A DNA stretch of 56,236 nt, filler included, from Bipalium vagum (lineage: Eukaryota): the NCBI GenBank assembly GCA_037834085.1. It is 3 parts of 3 records of this genome, joined end to end, with 100 filler letters (N's around TTAATTAATTAA, not from the genome) between each part and the next. Parts side by side here need not be neighbours in the genome. Positions count along the whole stretch, not along the records: positions 38,734 to 56,236 come from JBBMKC010057783.1; 2 more parts are not named here. One strand, given 5' to 3'. The translations under genes and the position numbers were made by a program. The notes below the pieces were generated by a model. The model saw nothing but the letters and a program-made list of their open reading frames with translations. It did no database searches and had not been told where the DNA came from. How positions within the stretch are numbered: position 1 is the stretch's first letter; each line of letters opens with the position of its first letter. Positions 38,734 to 56,236 of this stretch are shown here, one piece after another.

Positions 38734-38987
38734 ACGTTAACTATCGTAAAATTGGTCAAGCTCTTTTTTATCATATGTCCCAAAACAAGAGTAACTTCGT
38801 TTCGTGGAGAGATGTGGCTCAAAATATTTTTAATGAAAAATACCATTATAACAAGAAAATGAAAAGATGCTACGGAAATGGGTTGTGCGAAAATTTTCTT
38901 AGTGTAAATAATTTTTAATAAATAAAATCGGTTGTGGTTATCATGAGCAAAAAAGGCAAGGGGTTTCCAATTTAAAACACAGACCAA
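38734..38987 (-). mobile_element. Possible hAT (DUF4371-like) transposase remnant
   Basis: LAFFAHD resembles LAFRGHD, and SHISPRNEV..LGHMIKK resembles YxSPxIQNE. Confidence 0.35.
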
Positions 38988-39329
38988 TTCTACTATTATA
39001 TTAAAAAGTAGAATCCATATTCAAGGTAACATTACCAATATCAGTCTTTGATAATGGATAATGAAAGCCTTTGATGCTCATGATCATTTTTTTATATTTC
39101 CTGAAATAAAAATCATTTTTCTCAAAGGCCGGATTCGACCAGGCGAGCTCGGTGGGCTGCGGCAAGGCGCAGTGTTTTGGAGATGTCTATGGGAAAAACT
39201 ATTCTACCTTATATTACTGTAATTTTTATCCAATGTAAGAATATTTGATTTAATTAATCCAATTGAATATTTGATTTAATTAAACCTAAATGCTTAAAAA
39301 ATTTAACAATGCTCATGGAAATGAAATTG

Positions 39330-39676
39330 GTGGATCTTGAACGTTCTGTGTTGTTATTGCTGTTATGGGTCGACCACCGATAGGTCTGACTGCAAAGTCG
39401 CCAGTTCTTTGAATCGTTTAACAACATTGTACGCATTTCTTTGTTTGAATCCATTTGTGCGAACTATGTCGGCAGTCTTCATTCCAGCCTTGTGCAACTC
39501 ACAGATGGTCATGCGTTCGTGTTCACGGTTCATAACTAATTAATCTAAAGACATTCAAACAAATTAAAAAGTTGTATCAGATCAACGTTTTTCGAAGAAA
39601 TCAAAACTGTAAATCGCTTAAACAAAAATTTAAAAATCAATGAAAATAAAATTGCAACAACTTTTTGGCCACCCTG
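39330..39676 (-). mobile_element. 5' end of a Tc1/mariner-superfamily element (TIR plus HTH)
   Basis: CAGGGTGGCCAAAAAG end at 39676-39661; ATG 39533 MNREHERMTICELHKAGMKTADIVR...YNVVKRFKE, frameshift, then RPIGGRPITAIT. Confidence 0.7.
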
Positions 39677-41779
39677 CATATCTTACATATACAATGCGAC
39701 TTTTATTTTGGGCCACAATATTTCAAAAGTGGTCCAATATTAGAAGTTAAGACATAAAAAGGCTATGAAACGTGCTTATATGAACTTATGGATGTAATAA
39801 TAGAAATTAAAAGATTCTTTATTGCAAAGTTGCTTGGCAATATTATATTTATCTTCATATGATAATTTTTTTACTCATTCCTGATTTTGAAAATGTTATA
39901 CACGAAAATATTATTAAAACAAATTATTAAATTTTTAAACAAATTATTGACATTTTTGGACCAAGAATTTTATTTCTTATATGAAAATATCGAGAAATAT
40001 GATAAGTACAAATTATTGGTCCAAATATGGAGTTCGGTTTGATTATAGAAGTGTTTCATTTCAGAAATTGGTCCAAATTGCACTGTAGCTTAATGACAGT
40101 AAAACTGTTATTAATTGTTTCCGATTTTGGAGGTAGGGCTAAGTCGAAAAACTAAGATCATTCAAATGTATTATAAAACCCTATCTTTTTAATATTCTTT
40201 TCATTCTGATTTTATTGGACACATTCTATTTTTATTATTGATCTGAGGAAGTAATGATAATTCTGATGTTATTTATACAGATAATACCTTTTTCTTTATA
40301 TTGTTACCACCAATCTACAGCTATCAACCCCAACAATAATTAGCATTTATGTAATGGTATATAATTTTTATCAGGAAGCCTGAAAACGTCCCAGTTTTCA
40401 TTGATAGCAGTACTAGCAAATGTCATGAGTGTTATATTCTCCAGCCAGATAAAAGGTTCAAATGCGATAAAAGTCGCCTATGCGGTAATTAAAATTTCAA
40501 GAAAGGTTTATATTTTATCTTTGTTTTATTTTAGAACATTGTACCTTCAACGAGCCGGGATGTATTGGACTTGGTATTCGTAATTTTTCTATGATATATA
40601 ATGTCTTTCAATTTATGTAGAAGACCTAAGAATTCTGACTAATATTGGAATTCCTTGTCCCTATAATACTACCACTTACGACATAAAGGTTGGTCTTTGT
40701 GATGCTGCCAAATCCGGCATCCCAATGTCATCGGAGCTTATACAATTCTTGAATAGAAGAAAAGGGTGATTTGTTTTAAAATCACACCATTTTTAAATTT
40801 GTAATTTAGAGTCTGAAGTCTGGGAAACATTTAGTCTGAAAAAGAAATTGTTCCTAATAAAATAATTACTATAACTTGCTAATCTTTCTTTTTATTCATT
40901 TCAAGATTTAAACAAAAAAATAAAACTACCAATTTTTGTTTGATTAATTAAGATTTTAAAAAACATATTCCGTAGGTTTGAGATGATTGGTTGACTGAAT
41001 TTTACATAAGGATATACACAAGAGTAAATATATATGAACATCAAAAGTTACTGAATTAAGAGTTGAAAAAATATTTTTAAAAATGGTATTTTAAGCAATT
41101 AAACTTCATTTATTTTTGAGGATTACCTTGAGCTCGGCAGGTCTTTTGTCGTTGTGAATATTTAAACATATTGTAGAATTTTAAAAGTTTTATAAAGTGC
41201 TCAATATTTAAAATGTGTTTTATTACATTTTAAAATCTTTATAATAAAGGCACATTATATTAATTTATTGATTTTGTGAAATTTGTTTAAATATTATTTC
41301 TCTTTATGAATGAAACTGTCTCAATTTGTTGAAATCACAGCTAACAGTCGTCAAATATTAGTTTCATTTTTTTGTTTAATCATTTAATGTACAAAAAGGG
41401 GTATCATTTTATCGTTGTATTTAATATTACACAAAAACCAATATTTCTGAAAATTATTAATGATTCTTCTCATTGATTATAATCAATAATAATTATCAAT
41501 ACTTTCCTGAGCTCATAAATTTCAGCTATCTTACTAGAAATCGGTTTTCTTCTGTGACTATAATTGAGAAATGAATCGAAACATCGCTTCAGAACCTAAG
41601 TACTCGAAAAGATTATTGATACCAAATTCAGGGTAGTGAGTTCACGGTTGTATAGATTTTTTCTTGATAAACGGATATTTAATGTTTGCAAAGTTGAAGG
41701 GACACTATCTAAAGACCTATTTTTCTTATATGACTACATCTGATCTTATTATTAGTAAAAACTATTCGGAAACTTTGGA

Positions 41780-42010
41780 AAATAAATAATGAAATCCTTC
41801 GGCAACCGTACAACACCCAGACTTAGTTTCGACATATTTTCGTGATATTGATGGTCTATCGAATCTTTCGGCCTTAAAATACTTCCGAGAGATGGGAAAA
41901 AGTTATGATAGATTAATCTATTTTTATTAAAAAAATATATATGCTTTAAAGTAAACCTTCACAAATTATGAGAAAAGCCTGTGATAACCAGTCGAAAGGA
42001 TCACTATTGC
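41780..42010 (+). mobile_element. Highly decayed mariner C-terminal fragment
   Basis: EILRQP...PDLVSTYF resembles E.L.HPPYSPDLAPSDF. Confidence 0.35.
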
Positions 42011-42772
42011 GACAATTCGAAGAATATACTTAAAAGAAATGGAAATTAAAAATTTTAAACCAAAATAAGAAAAAAGATCTATATTATATTTTATTCAAGC
42101 ATGAACAATTCATTTCTAAAAAGATTTGATTGTAAAGGTCTTACAATATAAAGAATTAAATAAATTGGAAAGGAAAGAATTAAAGAAATGTTTGAAAAAA
42201 TTAACGAAACGCAACTAATATTAAAGGAAAAATTTCAATCCTTGGTCTTTAACTGAACAATTAAAATAAACGGGGTTGGTTTTCAGTAAATAGTTAATTA
42301 TTTACCATTTTTTTATGAATGACCTTCCACTCTTGAACTAATGTTTTAATTTTACATTTTTAGTCTCACCTAAGAGATTTACTGATAAAGTATGAGTCAA
42401 TGAGGCTTCTAATGGACTCCGCTTCATTAAAAGTATTGCTTTCAACGAATTATATCAATGACATAACAATTAAACAAATGAGATACGGATGCGTCAAGCC
42501 CGCTGAGTACAAAGACCATGAAAGCATGCCACCAAACGATCAATAATTTATTCTGAGTGACAAGAAATTTGTTTTTCTTTAAAACTAAACATGTTTATGA
42601 TAAATATATCTTCAAAAAAATATATGAAGGTCATAAAAACTTTTTATTGGTGTGATTAAAATAAATTTTAATGAATACAATAGTTAAACCAGGAAAATAA
42701 TAAAAAAATACAAAATCGTTTCTAATTTAAGCTCAGAAAACTTAAAGAATTATATAAACGGCAAATGATATC

Positions 42773-44762
42773 CTAATGGGTCAGGGTTTTACAAACGAGT
42801 GTGAGGAGCAAGGTTGATTCTTCGTCCTCGCTGGACGTGGAATGTTCTGTCAACGAAAACAACTGGGACATTTCGTGATTGTTGCTATTGATATAAAAGT
42901 CGTTGATGGTATCCATTTCGGAATGGAAAAGAGTTGTTTTCATGGATTCGGGGTTCGATGGATTTTCTGTGCCATAAGTACTGGAAGGTTGCATATTTGA
43001 TGTCGAATCGATGGTTTTCATCATTAATTCATTACTGACCGTTAAACTGTTTAAGTTGAGATTGAAAAGATCCGAATTCCTGGACAATATATTGATCGGA
43101 TCACAATTAATTTTTTCATTTGTTCTGGGCGATTGTGATTGGTTCTTCGAATTGAAATTCAAATCCTTGAATTTCGAAAGGAAATTAGAAACATTCGATT
43201 CTTCATTGTCCGAATCGTCATCTTTATCGTCACTGTCTTCTTCCTGCTCCTCACTATTTGTTTTGTTAAGCTTTTCAGTCGGCTTGAAGTTGTATTCCTC
43301 TCCTTCTGCCGATGCATCGGATTCTTTCTGAATTTCTCCAACCAAACTTGTCTGCAGTAATTTGGTATCAATCGAAACCTCTTCATAATCTTTGGCCAGC
43401 ATTGCCAAGTTGTACAGAGCCTCACAAAATTCGCTTTCTTCCAAACCCTCTGACACGAACCAATGTACAAAACTCCGTTTTGCGTACAGCCGGTGGAATT
43501 TCTGGGCCAGCCTTTGCCAAATGATGCTGATGGAAGAGGAATTTGTCATCATCACCACGCTGCTCTTTGTGTCCCCCATGTAGCTGTCCGGTAAAATAAG
43601 AGGGGGCTTATTCACAATTCCGACTTTAAATCCTGTGGGACACCAGTCTACGAAGTTGTATCGACGACTTGACTTTATTTCCGATAATGTGGAAAAGACC
43701 TCACAAGCGTTCACCAGGCCCCGATACACCAGTGAACAACTTAAATATTTCCCACTGAACGGATCACATTTCACCAATTGGTGGTTGATTTCAAACACAG
43801 ATTTGGTGATTTCGGCCAGACTGTTTTCGTCTCGGTCCATCTTGAACTCGTTTCCCAAAGGAGCAAAACTGACGAGAGGAAAATGTATTCTTGGATAAGG
43901 CACGAGATTTGTCAGAATTGCCTTAATGTCATTGAACATATCACTGCTGAATCTCGAGGATGCTGTTATACCACTATTGACTTGAGCGAAGATTCTGTTG
44001 ATTGTTGTCATTGTGGGCTGCTTCACAAACAAAATGTTGCATGAAATGTCAAACAATGCTTCGTTATCAAGTATTAGCCCAATATCACATTCCTCCATAC
44101 AAAAATGCTCTCCCAATATACTATTATACGGGCCGACGACACAGCTATCGAAATGAGGTGAAGGATGAATGGGTAGCTCAAATGTTAAAATCTTCATGTA
44201 CTCCTCCAATATTTCAAAAATTATGGGTGTAAGACCGGATCCGGAACCACCAGCCAGCGACCTGTAAAACAAAATCGAGTTTACCAAATCACACGATTCA
44301 ATCTCTTTTCTCAAATGACTTTCAATCGTTTGATACAGCAATCGACCTATTGTGTTAAATGCTCGAGAAAAATTTCCCGAACTATCGTCCATGCCATTAA
44401 TCAATTGGAAAGGATGGTAAAGGTTTCTATATGACCCTGTTCTTAATTGGTCTAGAAATATCCAACAATTAACTATTTTAATATTACATTACAATTACTA
44501 AGAACAGTTGGCTCCAGATCAATGAAAAGACCCCTAGGCACAAATTGTCCACAATGGGATTCTGAGAAAAACGTTTCAAATAATCTGTCACTTCCGTGTA
44601 TTCCGTCACTCATCTTTCCGCTCCTATCAATTCCGTGCTCGGCACATAACAATTCCCAATTTGAAAAGCCTATCTGGTTACCGGCTTGTCCGATGTGAAG
44701 AGATAAAATCTCTTTCTGAAAATAAATGTTTTCACATAAAAACCTTCAATCAGTATTACCAT
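42773..44762 (-). CDS. Highly divergent alpha-tubulin-like protein with long C-terminal extension, 632 aa; exons 44762-44760, 44715-44499, 44451-42773
   Basis: M|KEILSLHIGQAGNQIG, WEL.CAEHGI, VPR..FIDLEPTV, AGGSGSG, DNEA, TNLVPYPRIHFPL, FVDWCPTGFKVGI, YAKR.FVHW, DYEEV. ATG-only first exon, as in many animal alpha-tubulins. GT-AG introns of 44 and 47 bp; uninterrupted 1899-nt frame. Confidence 0.93.
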
Positions 44763-44989
44763 TCCTTTCAAATTCAAATTATTGATTAGATTGAAAATCA
44801 ATAAAAAGTTAATTAATAATTAATAATTTCTATTTCCTATTTTCTACAAGCTTTTCTATCAAGATATAATTGAATTTGTAGAAATTATTATTTCTTTTAA
44901 TGAGAATAGATTTTCAGCACAACCTATGTATAAGATTGGATGAAAGTTCTACAGCTTTTCATTATATTTATGTATTTTTGAGTATTTCA

Positions 44990-45190
44990 AGGACTTGAGA
45001 ACTTGTTTCGAAGCAATCCACTCATTTTACCAGTTTTTGTCATCATAATTCTTGAAGCTCTGGTCAGACAGACTAAGGTCTATCGACTGATCATGTCATG
45101 GTTAGATTTATCAATATTTGGTGAGTACAGTGGATTGGGTAAAACCTCCAATACAATCTTTAGCATTTCTATGATAGGTTTAGCAACTTA
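44990..45190 (-). mobile_element. Mariner C-terminal remnant
   Basis: VAKPIIEML...EVLPNPLYSPNI, LSDQSFKNYDD and WIASK. Confidence 0.65.
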
Positions 45191-46399
45191 GTACTCACAG
45201 TATGTATATCTAACGAGATTTATAAAAATAATTTTAAAAACCTACTAAGAAATCATAAATATATTTATTTTATTATTTTTATCACAAATAATCCTCCACA
45301 GAGTTTCAGGAGATTTTGGAAATAAAGTTAAACATTTCTTTGGTATTTTCATAGTTAGGAAAAAGAAAATTCGGTATGATAGAATTATGGACCTCAAAGT
45401 CATCTGTGGAGACTGCGAAAGAACTAAAAATTTTTGTGATTAAAACATTTTTGCAAAAAAATTAGACAATTTGTGAGATTAATTAATAAAGCATCTTTTT
45501 ATTTGTTATGTTTAGTTTTTATTTATTTTCATATTCACGTAAAATAAAAATCTCTGAGAAATTATCCTAAATGTTTATATTATTATTATTATTATTATTA
45601 TTAATATCATTATTATTATTATAAATTAAATTATTTCAAAAAATAAATTAAATGTGTAATTTAAAAATGGATAAGCTGACTTACTAAACATATAATTCAT
45701 AGTTAAAATAATTAAAAAAGGAATAAAAAAATAGGTAAAAGTTTAAATTGGAACAACATAGTTTTAAAAATAGTATGAGTCTGAGTTTGAAAAATATTTA
45801 AGGTCAGCATAAGATTGACGAAAGGCACAAAAAATTAGCTTCATCAAGCTTAAAAAATTTAAGGTCAATAAGCACCAAACATATTCAGACAGATAACAGA
45901 GTCAGATTTTACAAGCATAAACAAAAATTGGACGCTATAAATTGTAAAATATTTACATTCCAAGAACATCCTGTGTAACGCGGAGTACATAAGCTCAATC
46001 ACAAGTATTCTAGGGACTCATTGCAAAATCAAGTTTCAGTGTCATAAGAAAATTTGGTTAATTTTATTATCATTACTATTATCATCTCTTTTGATATTAA
46101 ATTGCACAAGATATATATATATTGGATAAAAGTCAAAAAAACTTTTTAATTCTAAAAAATTTAAAAATATCATTTTTAAATATCTAAAATTTTTTTTTAA
46201 AATTATTTTTTAAAAATAATTATTTTTTAAAAATATTAATTAAGGAAAACATTAATCATCTATTGATTTCTGCTTTCTCCATTTTGTGAATTAATTTCTG
46301 GTTTATTAAGAATCAGTAAATAAAATATATAAAAAATATACATCAAAATCAGTCAATCCAATAATCACTAGTCCTTAGCATTCAGAATTTTCCTTTTTT

Positions 46400-47050
46400 A
46401 TTCCCATCTTTTTTCTCCTTTTGTTTACACAGCGGTTAGGCTGGTAAATTGTCTCAGGGACTTTCCACAGCTTACAAGGCAACTGTGAAAGGAATTCCAG
46501 AGATTCTTATTAACCTTATTTGTAATAATTACTTTTAGTTTTTACCAATAAACGTATTTATCATTAATCGATATGTTCTCAATTTGCTTTTATTGTGTAG
46601 TTTTCTGTTATTTTGTCCCCATTAGTTTCGAATTAAACTCTATAAAACCTTCTGATAGCAAATATTTTGTTGAGTTACCTAACGTCCCAATTCGATATTC
46701 TTAATCCAGATATTCTTACTCCAGATTTTTTGTAATAACGTGTTCAGTTCTATGAATAAGCGCTGTGACATGATTATTAAGAATAAGGTGGGACAAATAA
46801 TTATTAAGAACAAAATGTTGTTACTAATTGTTTGTCTGTTTAACATAAATATATTCGTACCGATATTTTTTGTGTCACATATTTTCAAACTTTTCTAGTA
46901 ATTATGCTTATATTTGTAAAACAAACTATTTTCATCCTCTTGTTGTTTTTAAATATGCAGCATACTTAGAAACAATGGCCTATATATCTCTAACAATAAT
47001 ATTCTAACGATTTTTTCTTTAAATGTTATTTTATTATTTGCATTATAATC
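46400..47050 (-). mobile_element. Decayed Penelope-like RT fragment
   Basis: In order: V.DI.AIV (YVDD-like), EDENS, Y.KQTN (YRKPT-like), ALIHR; homologous to 17790-18040. Confidence 0.5.
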
Positions 47051-47269
47051 GTATGGATAATTATTGGAGTAAGTGCATATAGGTAATTTAAACAAAGGGG
47101 CCCAAATGATATTATCATACCAAAAATTCAGTTTAAATTATGAAAAGTATAATAAGTTATGTAAATTTTAAATTTTCACCGTAAAACAGAAATCATAAAA
47201 ATGAATTGTAGAGTTATAAAATAATAAATTATAATTAATCAAATCCTGCCATCTTTGAATTAATGTTAT

Positions 47270-47660
47270 ATAAGTGATTTCCTGTTAAAAAATGTCTCGC
47301 TGAGCTTTTAATGAGCTTCTCGACCCTGAAAGTTTTCCCGTTCAAGGAATTCTGTAGCGGCTAAAAATGAAAATTATAACGTAAGTAAAAATTTCTATAC
47401 ATGGAAAAGATTTCCAAACCTTAATATCAATTTTCTTATGATCAATGATATGAGGCCAGATAACATCGTTTTTGTATACATTGTCCAAAGGATTTACTTA
47501 TTACGAGTGCTTTTTGAGTACTATATTGTTCAATGTTATTTTAACGAGTATCATCATTTTCTAGATGTGCAATCCTGCTTTTCTGACGTCTTCCAATGTT
47601 ATAATCTTTTAAGAACCACATTTCAGTGAACAACTCATTTTTCATTCTTCGTTACCAATT
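47270..47660 (-). mobile_element. Internally deleted mariner catalytic-domain remnant
   Basis: LVTKNEK*V..NV (VTGDEKW-like), KAGLH, .PHI and LQNSLNGKTF. Confidence 0.6.
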
Positions 47661-47899
47661 TTTTCAAAAACGTGTGTTTTTATATTGGTTTATACTACAT
47701 GTTGAAATACGTTCCAATAAATTAGCCCTTGTTAAACTAATGCTTTTTAACTTCATTTAATTTTAAAATATTTTCTTCTTCTTCACCAACACATCTCTAT
47801 AGGACTATGCAAATCTTAAGGTGCGGCTAAGATTATGAAACATTTTATATAATTCAGTTGCTGATAGTTAATCAGCAGGTTTATTGTCTGAAGTGTTGT

Positions 47900-48900
47900 A
47901 AGTATTAATAGTGCCCCTTTAATCTTATCCGTCCACATATTTGATACACTCAAAGTACTATAATACACTCAATAATTGTTATTTCTATTAAGGTTGGCGA
48001 TTTCTCCTTGATATCCTGAGATTGCCGGGGGATTTAATATGAAATCCCTTGATATTGCTCATGGAACTTTAATATTTTGTTCTTAATTTGACTTACATTA
48101 CGTGTTTTACACTGGAGAGCTTTATTATATGCGTACAAAGTTTCAGTACGTTTTATAAATTAATGTCAATACTAAGAAAGAAGAAAATTTATTTACTAAA
48201 AATGTTTTTGTTTCGCATTCAATAAATATGTTTTGAGAAAAAATACCTGATTCGATTATACGATTAGTAAATTTTGTTATTTTTAAAAATTTTTAAGCTA
48301 AAAATCAATTACATAAAAAGGTTAAGAAATAATAAGAAAATAGAAAAGTAAGAATGAGAAATAAAAAATAAATTATTTAACACATAACCGAAAGGGGTCT
48401 GCAGAAAAAGTGAAACAGTTTTTCTTTTTTGAAAGTATTTTCCTATAGAAATGGCAAGTGCTACACCACGAAAGACAGTATGAACACCACAGAAATTATT
48501 AGTATCTTTACGGGATCTGATAAATCTGTTTTATAAGCCCACCACTACTAGGACATACCACTGGAACACTTTCCTCTTGGGAGTTCTGTTTAATCTTTGT
48601 TTGGAAGACACCTAATTTCAGAGGACTGAGTCGAATCCATTCATTTTGGTTTCTTTTAATTGACATTTTAACAGCTGCAATATTTCTTTTACACCACACA
48701 TTTCTTGGTCTTCTTGGAGTTGCAACATTCATAAGTCAATGTATTTGCTCAAAGTTTTGCACCAGACATTTCTCTGTTCTTCTAATCAGTTGACAGCCAA
48801 AATTGGTTTTAATACGCTTTTATTTTTTTTTCATTGAACGGGTACTTTGGTAATAAATTTGAATTATTTGAAATTATTGTTCATTTGTAAATTGATGCAC
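47900..48900 (-). mobile_element. Fragmented DUF4817/rosa-like transposase (N-terminus 48900-48590, C-terminal trace ~48040-47900)
   Basis: HQFTNEQ*FQIIQIYYQSTRS, RPRNV....NIAAVKMSI..N.N..IR....LG, then EIA.L near the end. Confidence 0.6.
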
Positions 48901-49767
48901 ATTCAAAACGGTGAACATTAATAAATATATAAACGAAATGTTAAAACAAATGAAATTAAATAAAAGTTTATATTCAAAATAGAAAATGCGTCTTCCTTAA
49001 TGAAAAACTCTTAATAATATCCATATTACTTGTTATTATTATATTATTATTTAATATATAATTTTTTTTATAAAAGTAATTTTATATATTTATTTTAATT
49101 TAGTTATCATTATTTTTTATTTATTTATGATTAAAAAAATTAATTAACTTAATCAAAAAAATTTATAACAATAAAATGTAAATGTTTTTATGAGTAATAA
49201 AAGTTTTGATTTGATTGCTAATCTGAAACCAACTAGATGAATTTGCTAATTGAACAGAGGAATTTTTGATATTGATTTTTTGATTAAATTGTTGATTACT
49301 GATAACTAAAATTATTTCTTTTCCCTCTTTGACTCTGACTACCACATAAACAAAGGGAATTGACAAGGATTCCTCAAAACTCGAATTAGCAAGCATTCTA
49401 AAAAAGTAGATTAAGAAAAGTATATAATAACTTAGCTAGTTATAAAGAAAAAAGGAAAAAATGCTAAGAAAATGAAGTAAATAAAAAAATCTCAATAAAC
49501 ATTGTGTGATATAAAATACAACCGTATCTTTAATTAAAAAATCGGTTCTCATCGTGTTCAAATTCAAAAATCTTTTATTGATTCAAGAGAAATTGGTAAA
49601 AACGATTAAGGAATAAATAATAATATAGAAAAAAATTTCGTTTCAATAAAAAAATAATTTATACTATTCAAAAAACTTAAAATATTAAAATAAAAAATAA
49701 TGCATCTGTTTTGAAAAAAGTTTGCATTTAAAAAAAGCCTCCTTCAAATTTTTATATGTATAGTATA

Positions 49768-50690
49768 CGAGGGTGGGTTGAAAAGTTCAGTGATACAATA
49801 AAATCGAAACATAAACAAATTTATTTTTCAATGTTGCCTCCTACAAGCTGATCAAACTTTATTAAAGGTTTCTCAAAATCTCACTATTTGACGAAAATCT
49901 TTGTCCATCGAGAATTTTCTTCAGGTTTCTGACGGGGCCAGATTTGGAGAATTAGATGGGTGTGGAATTAATTAATTAAGTGCAACTTTTTAAATTTTTC
50001 CCTTGAAAATTTACATGTGTGAGCAGGTGCATATCAAGGTTGAAAAAATTTGTTTACTCGACAGACCTGGACATTTCTCACGAATATGCTGTAACAGCTT
50101 ATCAAGTTGGTTTGCGTAATATAACACAGTTATCGTCTTATCTTTTTCAAGGCAGCCCATAAAAATAATACCTTTAGTAACCCAAAATACGGTAGCCAGA
50201 ATTTTTCCTGACGAGTGAACCGTTTTCGCCTTCTTGGTCGCTGGTTCATCCTTTGCTGTTCATTGCGTTGATTGAATTTTTGTTTTCGGCGGATAATAAT
50301 GAAGCCGGATTTTGACCACAGTGATAAATTGATTGAAGAAATCTGGATGATGTCGTAAAAGCTGCAAACACTGCTCTGAAGTTGCCACACGATGTTTTTT
50401 TGATGTGGCGTTATCACACACGGTACCCATCTTGCACACAGCTTTTTCATACTAAATTCTTCATGCAAGATGTGATGAACACGCTATTTCGAGATGCCTG
50501 TAGCTTCAGCAATCTGAATCAATTTTAATCTACGGTCTGTCAACACGATTTCTTGAATATTTTCCACCATTTCCTCGGAGGTTGCTGTTTTTAGTCTACC
50601 AGATCGTGGTGCCTCTTTAATGCTCACACCACCCTGATTAAATTGGCAACCAACTCGTAAACGTTTTTAATGAGGGTGAAAATTCAACCT
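49768..50690 (-). mobile_element. 5'-truncated mariner element with right TIR
   Basis: TA-CGAGGGTGGGTTGAAAAGTTC terminus at 49768; PRSGR, HEEFSMKKLCARWVP and PHPSNSPNLAPSE motifs. Confidence 0.85.
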
Positions 50691-50756
50691 TCACATACGT
50701 GTGGACTGATCTGACCACTGAGCTACATTCCCAGACTAATTTTCAATTTATCTCAC
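50688..50756 (-). repeat. Truncated second copy of the tRNA-derived repeat
   Basis: GGGAATGTAGCTCAGTGGTCAGATCAGTC...GTGAAGG plus the same upstream flank (GAGATAAATTGAAAATTA) as the 52967-53062 copy. Confidence 0.7.
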
Positions 50757-51169
50757 AGCAATGAATAAAGAAAGTGTATGTTAACTTAAAAGTATTTTGT
50801 TGTTGATTATTTGTATTGTTAATTTAAAAGTGCCCGTAAAAACAATTTTTGCCCGTCATAGTAATTTAGAATGTACTCTTTGGTACTAAAAGATTGGGCA
50901 CCATTGGTCTACACAGTCCTACACTGTTTTACACGATGTAAATGGGAAAATGCTATTTCATTTTCAATATAGTCCAGGCTTAGCTAGATTTTTATTATTT
51001 CGAGAAATAATATAAAAGGAGTCGGTTTAGATTGTTTTCCCTTTTCAAATATGGCTCATTTCTAAACCGTTACACTTTTACAATACAGTTTTAAAAGATG
51101 AAAATAATTAGAGCCCTTAGAGTGGAATGGTGTTCATATAGAATAATGTAAGGGTACCCTGTTAGTTTT

Positions 51170-51370
51170 CAAGTAAATATTTGGTACCATTTTATTTATA
51201 TGAGCATTTATAATATTTTTATTTTTTAAAATAATTTTCGTTGTTTTATTCATTTTATATTGGATAAATCAAGTGATAAACATGAACCTAGGACTTTGAA
51301 ACGTCACCTAATATCTAGGAAAATAATGATAACAGATCTTCATATTTGCAGATGACTCTAGCTTATGATT
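51170..51370 (+). mobile_element. Possible RTE-type LINE reverse-transcriptase remnant
   Basis: ITDL/IFADDSSL (FADD motif) with one frameshift. Confidence 0.4.
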
Positions 51371-52852
51371 ATGAGTTTAAAGTTAAAGTAAGATTTTTAA
51401 AAATTTTATTTAAAATGAAAAATTATAACAAAAAAGTTTAAAGTACTTTTCCTTCTTTCAACTTGGATATATAGGGTTGCTATTTTCGATTTACATTCAT
51501 CCCTATAATGAGATTAAATGAGGTTATTATTATGGTGGAATATAAAAAATAATCGAAGAAAGTAAGAATATCAAAACAATAAAAGAAAAGCCATAGAAAG
51601 TCTCGATGTAATAATCAATAGGTGGTTTCAGTAGAAGCATGTTTTACTATCCGCAGGTGATCCCATGAGTAGTAAACGAAAACAGAGAAGATATCCCTTA
51701 TCAAAATTACTTTACCGAAAGATTCAAGAAATCTGTTCGATCTGTTGATACAGTACTTACCAGAGCTGGATCATTACTTCTTCTCTGCCTCAATGAAATT
51801 GGATTTATCAGTTTTAATTAACTTTATTACTGTCTCTTCTCAGAATGAGTTAATCTAGAGAGAAGAAAGTTGTGCGATTTCTGAATAGATATTACATTTT
51901 ATCAACATAATCTTCATATCTCCAATCAATTATATATATCCTAAATATTTGTGTCAGATAGTAATAATAAAGGGCCTACTGACAACATATAATCCACCCC
52001 TCTAATAATAATATTATTATTATACTCAATTTCAATAACCCACCATTAAAACATTACAACTGAAACATTGAGATTATCAAATATATTTGATCGAATTGCA
52101 CTAAATAAATATATTTATATGGAAAGAATCTAGAGATGTCACGAGCTGATGTGGGTTGTATTCTCACAAAATACTTTCCCACCGAACCTTTGTAAAAATA
52201 TTCAAATATAATATAGATCAAAAGAAGAGATAAAAGACAAATCTTAAGAATTTTATAGAGGATCTCGATTTCTATCTAGTGCGCCTTACAACGGGACGCA
52301 TGACTAAATGTTGTCATGGTCTGTCATTTGATATCTCTTGTGGAAACAACTTGTCAATGAAGATACATTATAACGATAATTTCATTAATGTTGTCCTGTA
52401 AAAAATACCGATCTGTTTTATTACGTTTATCAATTTACATTTATATTTGCCAAAAAATAAATAAAATGAAATTCTTTCAGATTTTATCACTGTAATTATT
52501 CTTCAAGAGTAAAATTTCAAATAATAAAGGGAAAAATGAATTGTGAAAATATAAGTTGAAGCATAAATATAATTTTGTTTTAATTTTTACATTTTTTAAT
52601 ATTTTCAAAATTATATTTTTTAAAATAGAGAGTTGGATATATCAATAATTTCTGGGACTAAAAATGAATCTAAAAAATTTTTTTAAAAAATTTCCCCCAA
52701 AATATTATTTTTTAAAAATACAAAAATAATTTTTTTTCATTAAAATCGTATTTTAATACTAACACAAGAACGACGAATTATATTTATTATTATATTGAGT
52801 TAAAGCATCCATAATAGTTTCAAAACTGAAAGGAAACAATATAGATTGTCTA

Positions 52853-53427
52853 TTAGGTTGTCAAAAGTGTTTAAATGTTTGCCATTCATTTTATTTTCTA
52901 AAATCAGGTATCAATTAGTTTATCTGAATAATAAATATTAATTATATATTAATGGGAAGATTAATAGAAGATACCGGGATTCGAACCCGGAACCCTTCAC
53001 AAGAATAAAGACTGCTCTGACCGCTGAGCTACATCCACCGATTAATTTTCAATTTATCTCGCATCCCCCCCTTTAGAGCTCACATCCATATCCTTAACCG
53101 TCCCGAGTCTCTTACTTCCATTTCTTTCACATTCCTTTACTTTTCGACATTCTAGAACTTGTCCGCTGGTTGGTGTCCTGGTGTGGTCACAATGTTAATC
53201 TGTTCAGTATTATCGAGAAGAAATTCCATAATAAAAAAAATATATCTAAAAACCCAATCTTTTGTTCCTGTGCTGATTATTTAAACAATAATCATTCATA
53301 AATTTAATTATTTCCTTTACATAGTACTGTCCTTTTCAAAATTCTGCTGCCAAATAAATTATGTTGATTAATTCAAACAAAAATATTTTTCCAGTTTAAT
53401 AACGACATTAATTTTTTGACAACCTAA
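52853..53427. mobile_element. Mariner-type non-autonomous element (MITE), 575 bp
   Basis: TA-TTAGGTTGTCAAAA (52851-52866) and TTTTGACAACCTAA-TA (53414-53429): 14-bp perfect TIR with TA flanks. Confidence 0.75.
52967..53038 (-). pseudogene. tRNA-Ala-like pseudogene / tRNA-derived repeat, 72 nt
   Basis: GTGGATG-TA-GCTC-AGCGGTCA-GAGC...CCGGG-TTCGAAT-CCCGG-TATCTTC. D and T arms and A/B boxes are intact and the acceptor stem mostly pairs, but the anticodon stem does not pair. Confidence 0.75.
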
Positions 53428-55553
53428 TATTAGATTCCAGCCATTCAATACAATTTTACTTTAATAGAATCTTTCTATGTCTGAAGTACTATTTTGGAAT
53501 ATCTGAAAAATTATAAAATTTTAAAGCCAAAATGTTTCGAAAATTTTTTATCAAATATATTAAAGTAATTTTCAAAAAAAATTTAAAGAAAAATTGGTTT
53601 TTAAAAAATGCATCAAAAATATAGTTCATATTTATAAAATTAAAAAGGACCATAATATTATCTAATAATAATATATTATTATTAGATCTAGGAAATTATC
53701 TGCTAAATAAAATAATATAAATAAATTTATGTAAAATATAAAATTATTAAAATTTAATAAAATTCCTACTTATTTTTATGAAAATTTTTTAAAATTAATA
53801 CAAAAACTATTAGTAAAAATAAATGCACATATAAATTATAACGTCGCGGAATTAGTGGGAAAAAAGTTAAAGAATATTAATTTAATGAAAATGACGAAGG
53901 TATATATTGAGGTGATCATTGTATCATCTGGAATCGTTCATAATACTTTAGAATTTGATATTATAATGGGTCGTCGAAATAAATCCGGAACATTTTCAAA
54001 GTTATATGAAAAGGAAATCATTATAATCATTATAATTGTTTTTGTTTAAATAAACTAATTTATCAATAAAATAGATTAGCTAAACTTGAATTATTTAATA
54101 TTAATTTTGGATTAAGAATAGAAACGAAGAACGGCATTATTGTAGTCACTTTGAACCGGAATAAAGTCAAAAGAAATAATTCAATGGTTTATCAGTTGGT
54201 CAAAAGGTTTATTGAGACAAAGGACACAGTAAACGCCAAAATAAAATGTCACAATATATGATCTGACCGCAAAAGAAATGATAGAAAGCAGATAGGACAA
54301 GATAATGCCACCTCAATTTTCCAATTTGATCTCAAAGTGGATGACATATATCGTTGTGTTAGATAAGGTTGTAAAACCGTGGATGAACGAAATAATTAGT
54401 AGGTGACAATATTTTTTTCAGCAAGACTCTGATCTTACCCATAAACCTAGGTAAAAATAAGCATTGCTTTACGGAAATCTACCATACGTTGATCATCCGA
54501 TTTATATTCACCTCAGAGATTTGACTGTATCCTCTCTATTATTACCTATGGGGTGTAGTTGAGTCATAAGTTAATCAAAAACCTGCTAATTTTTATTGTA
54601 ATAAAATTAATAGTTTTTTATATGCACGTCCTTTTATTAAGATTATAGATTTTCTGGATTTATCTCCACGAAAATCTATAATTAATCTCTATTTTAAAAT
54701 ATTTTATACCTTTAAGTGATTTTACAATTTTTCATGTTTCTAATCATAGTTTGAAGGGGTCTTCGATGTCGTTGAAGCTTATGGGATTGATACAGTGAAA
54801 ATGGCATTCAAAAATATGAAGGTTTGGTTGTAAATGATCTTAACAATTTTACTATTCTTTTAAAAGATGGCAAAAAAGAAAATGAAAAAGAATGGATTTG
54901 AGTCGCCCAGTTGTTTAATGATCTTAACGGATGTTGATTTGCTTATTAAAAATAAAGAGACAAATGTAAAATATGTTTAAATCATGAAATCATTGACCAA
55001 CTTTCAGAAAGTTCTATTCAGCTGTAAGATAAACAACATCTCTTATGTTATGAGCAGTTTGTGCAGCAGCGTTTATATAGGAATCATTGTTAGCTACAGG
55101 GGTGAAGATAGCTACATCAGCAAATGCATAATACTGAAGTCTCAGTACAGGAAATCCAACCACATCGTATCAACAATCAGGGATAATTTGATGGTAAATA
55201 CTTTTAAATACATTTTTTGTTTTTTATATTATTAATATAAAATATAATATAATAATAATAATTAATAATAATAACTTATAATTTTTTTATAATGCAACTG
55301 GCCATAATTAAGAAGTTTTGCGAAAATATAATGTAGCATGTCATACAAAGAGCCCAGAGTTGCAAGGTTGCCAGAGGCGATCGTTTGAATGACATCTTTT
55401 TGAATTGTAAATGTTTGTACCGTCTGTATTTACATAAAATTATAAATTGAATTACTGAGCTTTTTAATTTATTTGTAGGGAGCAAAAACGAATGAAAGTA
55501 ATAAAGGTTCTTTTTATGGACGAATGATAAGTACACACCTGTTTAAATACATA

Positions 55554-56236
55554 CTGGGTGTTCAAGTTAAACGTTCATAAATAAAAGCGTAATATTTTTT
55601 ATGCTGTAAAGTTTTATTTAAAATAAATTTATTTGATCGAATAACCTTTATTGGGGATTTAGTAAATCCTACTTTATATATAAACTTATGTTGTTTAAAT
55701 GCATAAATAATGACAATAAATAAATGTACGTGTTTAAAATTAAATTAAATTTTTTGATATGTCTTACATATTATCAAAATCGGATAAAATTAGGCTGGTA
55801 GAGCTATTTTTTAAAACTGAGAGTTTCGCTGAAACTCAGAGAATATTTTCAACCGAAAAAAAATAAAACGAAAGAGTGACACGTCTTCAATACAGCAAAT
55901 AAGAAAAGTTATTTTTAAATTCCAGCAAACTGGTTGCATTAATAAAGATCACAATGTGCGATCTCCTAGAGCTTCAGAATAGAAAAGAAAGGATATTGAT
56001 ACTGTTTTACACCAGATGAAAGCAGAGGGAACATCTACGAGCATAAGGAAACTGATTTCTGCTTCAGGTTCCTCTATTGGATTAGTTCACACGTATCTCA
56101 GACGTGAATTGAAATTATTTCCCTATAAAGTTACAATTGGACAGTCTCTCTCAGACAATCATAAGTCAAATCGTTATGCCTTTTGCAAACGGATGCTGTC
56201 AAATATATCCAAGGATGATACATTTTTATCCCGAAT
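55554..56236 (+). mobile_element. Left part of a Tc1/mariner-superfamily (DUF4817-type) element running off the window
   Basis: TA-CTGGGTGTTCAAG end; ATG 55759 MSYILSKSDKIRLVELFFKTESFAETQRIF, frameshift in an A-run, then KFQQTG, STSIRKL, LRRELKLFPYKV and RYAFC. Confidence 0.8.

Follow-up and report, generated by a model that had tools for sequence, protein, structure and literature searches.

A divergent alpha-tubulin gene of Bipalium vagum with Ala at the catalytic Glu254 position, and a flatworm subfamily that lacks this residue

Residue E254 of alpha-tubulin forms the last part of the exchangeable nucleotide site on the beta-tubulin subunit below it, where it activates the hydrolysis of guanosine triphosphate (GTP). 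It thereby couples assembly to hydrolysis and underlies dynamic instability. Its mutation is lethal in yeast, and the same mutation is the standard laboratory route to GTP-state microtubules. Here, we describe an alpha-tubulin gene of the flatworm Bipalium vagum (assembly GCA_037834085.1) that naturally encodes Ala at this position. The gene is located on the minus strand of a 56,236-nucleotide stretch of DNA, hereafter the window, in the part that spans positions 38734-56236 and comes from record JBBMKC010057783.1. In the engineered human tubulins alpha-E254A, E254N and E254Q hydrolysis is blocked, and they form stable GTP-lattice microtubules with D251 intact (PMC7018511, PMC8764682, PMC11893814). 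The window protein resembles these chains (PDB 7sj9 and relatives) in having a non-acidic residue at 254 next to an intact D251. However, the engineered chains are in-vitro point mutants of canonical tubulin, whereas the window protein is natural, about 55% diverged from canonical alpha-tubulin, kept by selection throughout the phylum, and known here from its sequence.

The only natural precedent that we found is the alpha3-tubulin of Toxoplasma and its coccidian relatives. In this apicomplexan isotype D251 is replaced by T and E254 by H or Q, and the protein is predicted to be without GTPase activation; it also has a long C-terminal tail of 48 residues and an MPREI N-terminal insertion, and has been proposed to stabilise the polymer (PMC10056924). 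The window protein shares with alpha3 the general character of a natural isotype predicted to be without the GTPase-activating function, with an unusually long tail and with changes in the regulatory motif at the N-terminus. The details are different. The flatworm proteins described below keep D251 and have Val, Ala or Ile at 254, and the window protein begins with MKEI without the insertion. The tails are unrelated, their length being 48 residues in alpha3, 196 in the window protein and almost none in the proteins of parasitic flatworms. Since alpha3 and the flatworm proteins belong to different eukaryotic supergroups, an independent origin of the two is likely.

The identity of residue 254 follows directly from the DNA. 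The minus-strand reading around the site is ...SSRFSSDMFNDIKAILTNLVPYPRIHFPL..., in which AAG at 43924-43922 encodes Lys and GCA at 43921-43919 encodes Ala, and the segment that contains this Ala codon reads FNDIKAILTNLVPYPRIHF. Residue mapping onto the canonical flatworm alpha-tubulin P0094 (residues 1-440) gives Asp for D251, Lys for T253 and Ala for E254. The same assignment results from a HMMER comparison of the exon 3 product with the alpha-tubulin chains of the PDB, which is ungapped around the 254 segment (E about 1e-104). The best match is chain 7sj9_A (457 residues, alpha-1B), which reads DLTAFQ where canonical alpha-tubulin has DLTEFQ and which we take to be the engineered E254A chain. 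All 60 PDB matches listed are alpha-tubulin chains with E-values of 7e-105 to 1.4e-100. The Ala codon (43919-43921, minus strand) is thus placed by the DNA reading, the PDB alignment, the residue mapping and a short-read contig discussed below, and the retained Asp codon GAC of D251 (43928-43930, minus strand) by the DNA reading and the residue mapping. Of the catalytic pair D251/E254 of alpha-tubulin, the first residue is present and the second is Ala. The original prediction of this substitution, in an ungapped register and with D251 kept, was therefore correct.

Several properties identify the protein as an alpha-tubulin. The exon 3 product matches the Pfam families PF00091 (Tubulin, 1.1e-26) and PF03953 (Tubulin_C, 1e-34), and exon 2 alone reaches 25.8 bits against PF00091, which is under the 33-bit cut-off. 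The protein is 44% identical to canonical alpha-tubulin, as compared to 30-32% for beta-tubulin. It also has the 8-residue insert in the S9-S10 loop that is specific to alpha-tubulins: the window protein and its flatworm relatives align without gaps at alpha residues 361-368, where two beta-tubulins are gapped by 8. In a tree with a beta-tubulin outgroup the protein falls inside the alpha-like radiation. The T4 loop of the window protein, AGGSGSG, departs from the PROSITE tubulin signature, [SAG]-G-G-T-G-[SA]-G, in having Ser for Thr145; the motif GGGTG[SA]G is kept in 25 of the 26 other members of the flatworm clade described below. The gene is intact and of alpha type, and the Ala replacement of E254 is real.

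The gene stands out from its surroundings by its composition. The window part at 38734-56236 is very AT-rich, with a GC content of 0.21-0.33 outside genes, and rises to 0.39-0.41 in the single block 42734-44733, which contains the gene. Two minus-strand open reading frames (ORFs), one of 543 codons (42773-44404) and one of 59 codons upstream of it, match Pfam Tubulin, and the larger one also matches Tubulin_C. They are joined in a model of three exons (all coordinates on the minus strand). Exon 1 contributes only the start codon ATG (44760-44762) to the coding sequence, and the donor GTAATA follows directly after it. Intron 1 (44716-44759; 44 nt, GT..AG, phase 0 after codon 1) ends in TTTTCAG. 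Exon 2 (44499-44715; 217 nt) comprises codons 2-73 and the first base of the next codon, and holds the T1 loop GQAGNQ, a shortened H1-S2 loop without K40, and the T2 loop DLEP. Intron 2 (44452-44498) is 47 nt long, GT..AG and of phase 1. The tubulin core in exon 3 (43364-44451), which corresponds to alpha residues of about 76-438 by the Pfam and PDB matches and the residue mapping, contains the landmarks T3 (DDSSGNF), T4 (AGGSGSG), T5 (VVGPYN), T7-H8 (NDIKAILTNLVPYPRIHF) and S9 (FVDWCPTGFKVGI), as well as the M-loop, the alpha-type S9-S10 insert and H11-H12. It is followed by a C-terminal extension of 196 residues, the first 178 or so of which (42830-43363) are acidic, Ser/Asn-rich and weakly conserved, whereas the end (42776-42829) is a conserved motif. 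The stop codon TAG is at 42773-42775, and a probable polyadenylation signal AATAAA, recognised by its match to the consensus alone, is at 42642-42647, about 125 nt past the stop.

This model, which agrees with the predicted open 632-codon alpha-tubulin gene with clean splice sites, has 632 codons and a stop (3 + 217 + 1679 = 1899 nt), a figure obtained by arithmetic from the exon lengths, as the exons were searched one by one. With M1 the N-terminus becomes M-KEILSLHIGQAG, which puts G10 and Q11 at their canonical alpha-tubulin numbers, and the N-termini of related flatworm proteins read MKEV, MREV or MHQV. The contig of an orthologous gene (L001) starts with GTAAGA...TTTCAG immediately 5' of the same exon 2, and the contigs of three paralogues (L002, L006 and L009) have an intron 2 acceptor at the equivalent place. 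One intron follows the start codon directly and the other interrupts codon 76; vertebrate alpha-tubulin genes have introns at these two positions as well.

The region 42700-44900 is spanned by a Logan contig of sequencing run X1, with 0 differences and at a k-mer depth of 23.6. This match rules out an assembly slip, and the concern that GCA might be a sequencing error for the Glu codon is likewise removed by it and by the orthologue, which also has Ala. X1 is the only public run that holds the locus and is probably the source sample, so that it does not represent an independent individual.

The orthologue, P0037, is encoded on the 2-kb genomic Logan contig L001 (run SRR33002330). It has Ala at 254, and its introns match those of the window gene in both positions and phases, with lengths of 217 nt for exon 2 and 46 nt for intron 2. 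Between the two cores, 282 of 362 residues are identical, and the proportions of nonsynonymous and synonymous differences (pN and pS) are 0.143 and 0.94, respectively. The pN of exon 2 is 0.179. The C-terminal extension has a pN of 0.50 and a pS of 0.79. Because synonymous sites are saturated against this only orthologue (pS 0.88-0.94), we give pN and pS and no ratio of substitution rates (dN/dS). The question of whether dN/dS might be near 1, which had been raised together with the original prediction, can hence be answered for the core in terms of its pN of 0.143 against a pS of 0.94, but saturation precludes a true dN/dS. Purifying selection on the tubulin core is strong. The constraint on the extension is weak; nonetheless, it is open at similar length in both species and has a similar end motif.

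The original prediction treated the gene as a single oddity. It turned out to be one member of a flatworm clade of 27 proteins that includes paralogues. The nearest relatives of the window protein are divergent proteins and not the canonical alpha-tubulins, to which its identity is 44-45%: sequences from Logan, MetaClust and ENA are 56-69% identical to it, and trematode and cestode proteins are 47-50% identical. In the records examined, the latter have no annotation more specific than 'Tubulin alpha chain'. An exhaustive HMMER search over 1.84 billion cluster representatives supplied the sequences for two trees with a beta-tubulin outgroup, a quick one of 148 rows and a careful IQ-TREE search of 72 rows and 361 columns, a handful of which are those of the trait itself. 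Gamma, delta, epsilon and zeta tubulins and the apicomplexan alpha3 were left out of both. The two trees agree on the three groupings that follow. In the careful search, the 27-row flatworm clade has an ultrafast bootstrap (UFBoot) support of 98 and an SH-like approximate likelihood ratio test (SH-aLRT) support of 98. The window protein and P0037 pair with 100/100 support, and together they belong to a subclade of seven long-tailed proteins (also 100/100), which is nested in the 27-row clade. A second homologue search with a profile of the clade was dominated by fused canonical alpha-tubulin models and gave one new member, P0279.

The clade has Val in 20, Ala in 4 and Ile in 3 members at position 254. 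Glu or Asp is found there in none of the 27, which disposes of the possibility that the orthologues all have Glu, and D251 is present in 26. There is also no other acidic residue at 252-256 in any member. The cestode members come from Echinococcus granulosus and E. multilocularis (CDS39805.1), Taenia solium (TsM_000890500) and T. asiatica, Hydatigera, Hymenolepis diminuta, H. microstoma and H. weldensis, and Rodentolepis. The trematode members come from Clonorchis, two Opisthorchis species, Fasciola hepatica (THD23391.1) and F. gigantica, Fasciolopsis, Echinostoma, Paragonimus and Calicophoron. Within the clade, the cestode proteins are sister to the trematode proteins, and the Logan, MetaClust and ENA sequences branch around them, as is expected if the gene is older than the divergence between parasitic and free-living flatworms. 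The members closest to the window protein probably come from free-living flatworms. As far as can be judged from these sequences, Val, Ala or Ile replaced Glu254 long ago and has been kept since in an old, phylum-wide, multi-paralogue subfamily. We found no paper on this clade, including by the accessions of six of its members, in the literature searched, which left most subscription journals outside; the gene family is apparently undescribed. The published alpha isotypes of Fasciola, which are 72-95% identical to each other according to the paper on the tubulin isotypes of this genus, are not members of the family without E254.

More than one copy of the gene appears to exist in at least one relative. 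The genomic run SRR33002330 holds five clade members, P0037, P0052, P0056, P0097 and P0089, on Logan contigs L001, L002, L006, L007 and L009. If this run represents one organism, which is probably a free-living flatworm, its genome appears to contain at least five paralogues, and the genome of B. vagum probably has further copies of the subfamily elsewhere. Another run, SRR21676451, contains full-length intron-less contigs of P0060 and P0279, although closely related members in the genomic run have an intron acceptor at the expected place. The simplest explanation is that the intron-less contigs are derived from messenger RNA, and transcription of these two clade members is thus probable. The 3' end of the contig with P0279 (L008, 1545-1580) ends in CTGTCTCTTATACACATCT, which we take to be a Nextera adapter, i.e. 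library sequence and not part of a genome or transcript.

Divergent alpha-like tubulins seem to have lost the catalytic Glu repeatedly. The 145 non-beta cluster representatives (at 50% identity) nearest to the query have Glu at 254 in 95 cases, Asp in 19 and a non-acidic residue in 28 (Q in 9, V in 4, A in 3, S in 3, H in 2, K in 2, and G, L, N, Y and I in 1 each). Among the latter are two further groups of flatworm alpha-like tubulins, which stand on long branches outside the 27-row clade. The Paragonimus westermani protein KAF8569058.1 (P0159, 647 aa) has Ala254, like the window protein, but Asn at 251; the Fasciolopsis buski protein KAA0189647.1 (P0164/P0265) is similarly divergent but has Gln254.

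Canonical alpha-tubulins (human TUBA1A and TUBA1B, flatworm P0094) have the same fold, Pfam Tubulin and Tubulin_C matches and S9-S10 insert as the window protein, and are 44-47% identical to it. The S7 segment TNLVPYPRIHF, S9 (FVDWCPTGFKVGI), D251 and much of H11-H12 are kept. Within the clade, the best-conserved parts are S7, the T3 and T4 loops, S9 and H11-H12 (conservation of 0.78 for the latter). The S9 sequence PTGFKVGI, which includes K352 of the longitudinal interface, is invariant, and Q11, D69, E71, D98, N206 and N228 of the non-exchangeable nucleotide site (N-site) are invariant or nearly so. In the window protein itself, the N-site contacts Q11, D69, E71, D98, S140, G143, G144, G146, N206 and N228 are kept. 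A conserved N-site, conserved longitudinal faces and a conserved H11-H12 are what is expected of a subunit that binds nucleotide, contacts beta-tubulin and is displayed on the polymer.

The differences from canonical alpha-tubulin are not limited to E254. The window protein has no K40, begins with MKEI instead of MREC, has AGGSGSG instead of GGGTGSG in the T4 loop and the substitutions N101G, S178D, E183G and Y224M in the nucleotide pocket, and its M-loop is almost wholly different. In place of the acidic tail with a Tyr it has the 196-residue extension. Two of these features extend to the clade as a whole: no member has K40 (the H1-S2 loop of the window protein is 2-3 residues shorter), and no member has an acidic Tyr-terminated tail, the parasitic members ending a few residues past DYEE.

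The extension of the window protein ends in ...CKTLTH and has a GC content of 0.41, as compared to about 0.26 in the flanking DNA. No Pfam family and no Atlas relative (best 0.78) were found for it. The roughly 180 residues upstream of the end motif are barely alignable among the long-tailed proteins, and the extension is probably disordered. However, all seven long-tailed proteins (the window protein, P0037, P0051, P0052, P0056, P0058 and P0060) end in an acidic patch and the motif S/T-L-[LM]-x-x-L-[IV]-x-x-T. It takes the form S/T-L-L-x-x-L-V/I-x-x-T in the window protein (EDEESTLLLTLVCKTLTH), and the sequences ...EPSILINLISMTLMN in P0037, ...SLMESLIRLT in P0051 and P0052, and ...SLMEELIRIT in P0056, P0058 and P0060. 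A low-confidence model predicts a helix for this motif, which is most likely a docking site for a partner. The orthologous, medium-tailed proteins P0089 and P0279 share another C-terminal end, …R-S-x-S-V-N-E…W-S-K-S-(S)-C-[LF]. Separate sub-branches thus appear to have evolved separate terminal motifs.

By analogy with the engineered human tubulins, these features can be combined into the following mechanism. The protein would pair with beta-tubulin and join the lattice, where its T7-loop/H8 face would meet the exchangeable GTP that is bound by the next dimer below. As residue 254 is Val, Ala or Ile and no other acidic residue is present at 252-256, it should fail to trigger hydrolysis at that interface. 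GTP would then persist there, which would make the microtubule, or a patch of it with this subunit, intrinsically stable. The specialised structures suggested with the original prediction, flatworm sperm cortical microtubules or 9+'1' axonemes, are conceivable sites of use. As these proteins have neither K40 nor a tail that could be tyrosinated or glutamylated, such microtubules would escape the usual enzymes of the tubulin code. In the sub-branch of the window protein, the 196-residue and probably disordered arm would dock a partner through its end motif. We consider it probable that the gene encodes a functional divergent alpha paralogue that is hydrolysis-dead, co-assembles with beta-tubulin and gives rise to stable microtubules or stable patches. 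A more far-reaching proposal, which we advance tentatively, is that of an ancient, phylum-wide subfamily of hydrolysis-dead subunits without tail and K40, with one copy in the parasites and at least five in the run of one relative, which would build or seed permanently GTP-like microtubules unseen by tubulin-code enzymes, and to which the window lineage would have added an arm with a partner-docking motif.

A number of observations weigh against a stable lattice formed by this protein. D251 is kept, and residual or partner-assisted hydrolysis may be conceivable on this ground. Residue 254 is non-acidic in as many as 28 of the 145 representative clusters of divergent alpha-like tubulins, and such a residue may be typical of proteins that no longer act as canonical lattice subunits. 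Conservation within the clade is lowest in the lateral-contact elements, namely the M-loop, H3 and the H1-S2 loop, and the M-loop of the window protein shares only 18% with canonical alpha-tubulin. With lateral contacts as diverged as this, normal 13-protofilament assembly is not assured. The changes N101G, S178D, E183G and Y224M affect contacts of the non-exchangeable GTP and are found only in the window protein and P0037, which also have G142A and T145S in the signature loop. These pocket changes may weaken nucleotide binding and the stability of the heterodimer. An AlphaFold2 model of the exon 3 product (21-row alignment) was too poor for use, with a mean predicted local distance difference test score (pLDDT) of 41 and a predicted template modelling score (pTM) of 0.30. 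Finally, neither an RNA run of B. vagum nor a transcript of the gene was found among public runs.

The last point is also what could be said in favour of an artefact or a decaying pseudogene, together with the fact that the sole run holding the locus is probably the source sample. This explanation is effectively refuted. The short-read contig, at a depth of about 24, shows zero differences, a frame of 632 codons is open within DNA of 26% GC, the orthologue has the identical Ala and introns with a core pN/pS of about 0.15, and Glu is absent at 254 across the entire clade. It is also improbable, in our opinion, that the protein is a polymerising alpha-tubulin that still hydrolyses GTP usefully, with D251, the water network or a co-evolved beta-tubulin compensating for the loss and the substitution tuning the dynamics. 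The retention of D251 in 26 of 27 members fits such compensation, and so does the confinement of residue 254 to Val, Ala and Ile, which shows selection on the site instead of free drift. However, the human E254A, E254N and even the isosteric E254Q tubulins are blocked despite their D251 (PMC7018511, PMC8764682, PMC11893814), and the clade offers no substitute acidic residue at 252-256.

An alpha-like regulator that acts outside the lattice deserves more attention, although we find it rather unlikely. Such a protein would bind beta-tubulin or microtubule ends, for example in capping, sequestering or at a nucleation site, by a longitudinal contact of GTP-state type, and its tail would recruit further factors. 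It is favoured by the low conservation of the lateral-contact elements next to kept longitudinal faces and a kept H11-H12, and by the 196-residue extension with its conserved terminal motif. The presence of at least five paralogues in the single run SRR33002330 suggests specialisation, and the altered N-site of the window lineage (N101G, S178D, E183G and Y224M) keeps the idea of a non-polymerising regulator alive. On the other hand, H11-H12, the surface on which the lattice presents itself to motors and microtubule-associated proteins, is among the best-conserved parts of the clade, which fits a subunit exposed on a polymer. The neodermatan members are entirely without the extension, and M-loops and H1-S2 loops vary in many bona fide tubulins. 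A hydrolysis-dead subunit that co-assembles with beta-tubulin remains the explanation that we prefer.

Two further features were observed in the same part of the window. The minus strand of 50011-50627 contains short ORFs in several frames (…KEAPRSGRLKTATSEEMVENI…, …MKKLCARWVPCVITPHQK… and …TITVLYYANQLDKL…) at a local GC peak of 0.38. Presumably, these are pieces of a frame-shifted mariner-type transposase; two of them gave no match in Pfam at E up to 0.1. At 52965-53039 (minus strand) there is an element resembling a transfer RNA (tRNA), which scores 37.5 bits against the Rfam tRNA model (gathering score 29) and to which ARAGORN assigns no anticodon. Either a pseudogene of a tRNA or a repeat derived from one may account for it.

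In summary, the family is not a wholly new system but a new variant, old and widespread, of a type of protein noticed once before. If the proposed function is true, this family would provide natural, evolution-optimised material for structural work on the GTP lattice, a counterpart of the engineered E254A, E254N and E254Q tubulins. About one in five clusters of divergent alpha-like tubulins is without an acidic residue at 254, and the phenomenon may thus be general and overlooked. The family occurs in the parasites Echinococcus, Taenia, Fasciola, Clonorchis, Opisthorchis and Paragonimus. A family that has been without E254 since before tapeworms, flukes and the branch of B. vagum split would show, if its members act as proposed, that animals make use of constitutively stable lattices.

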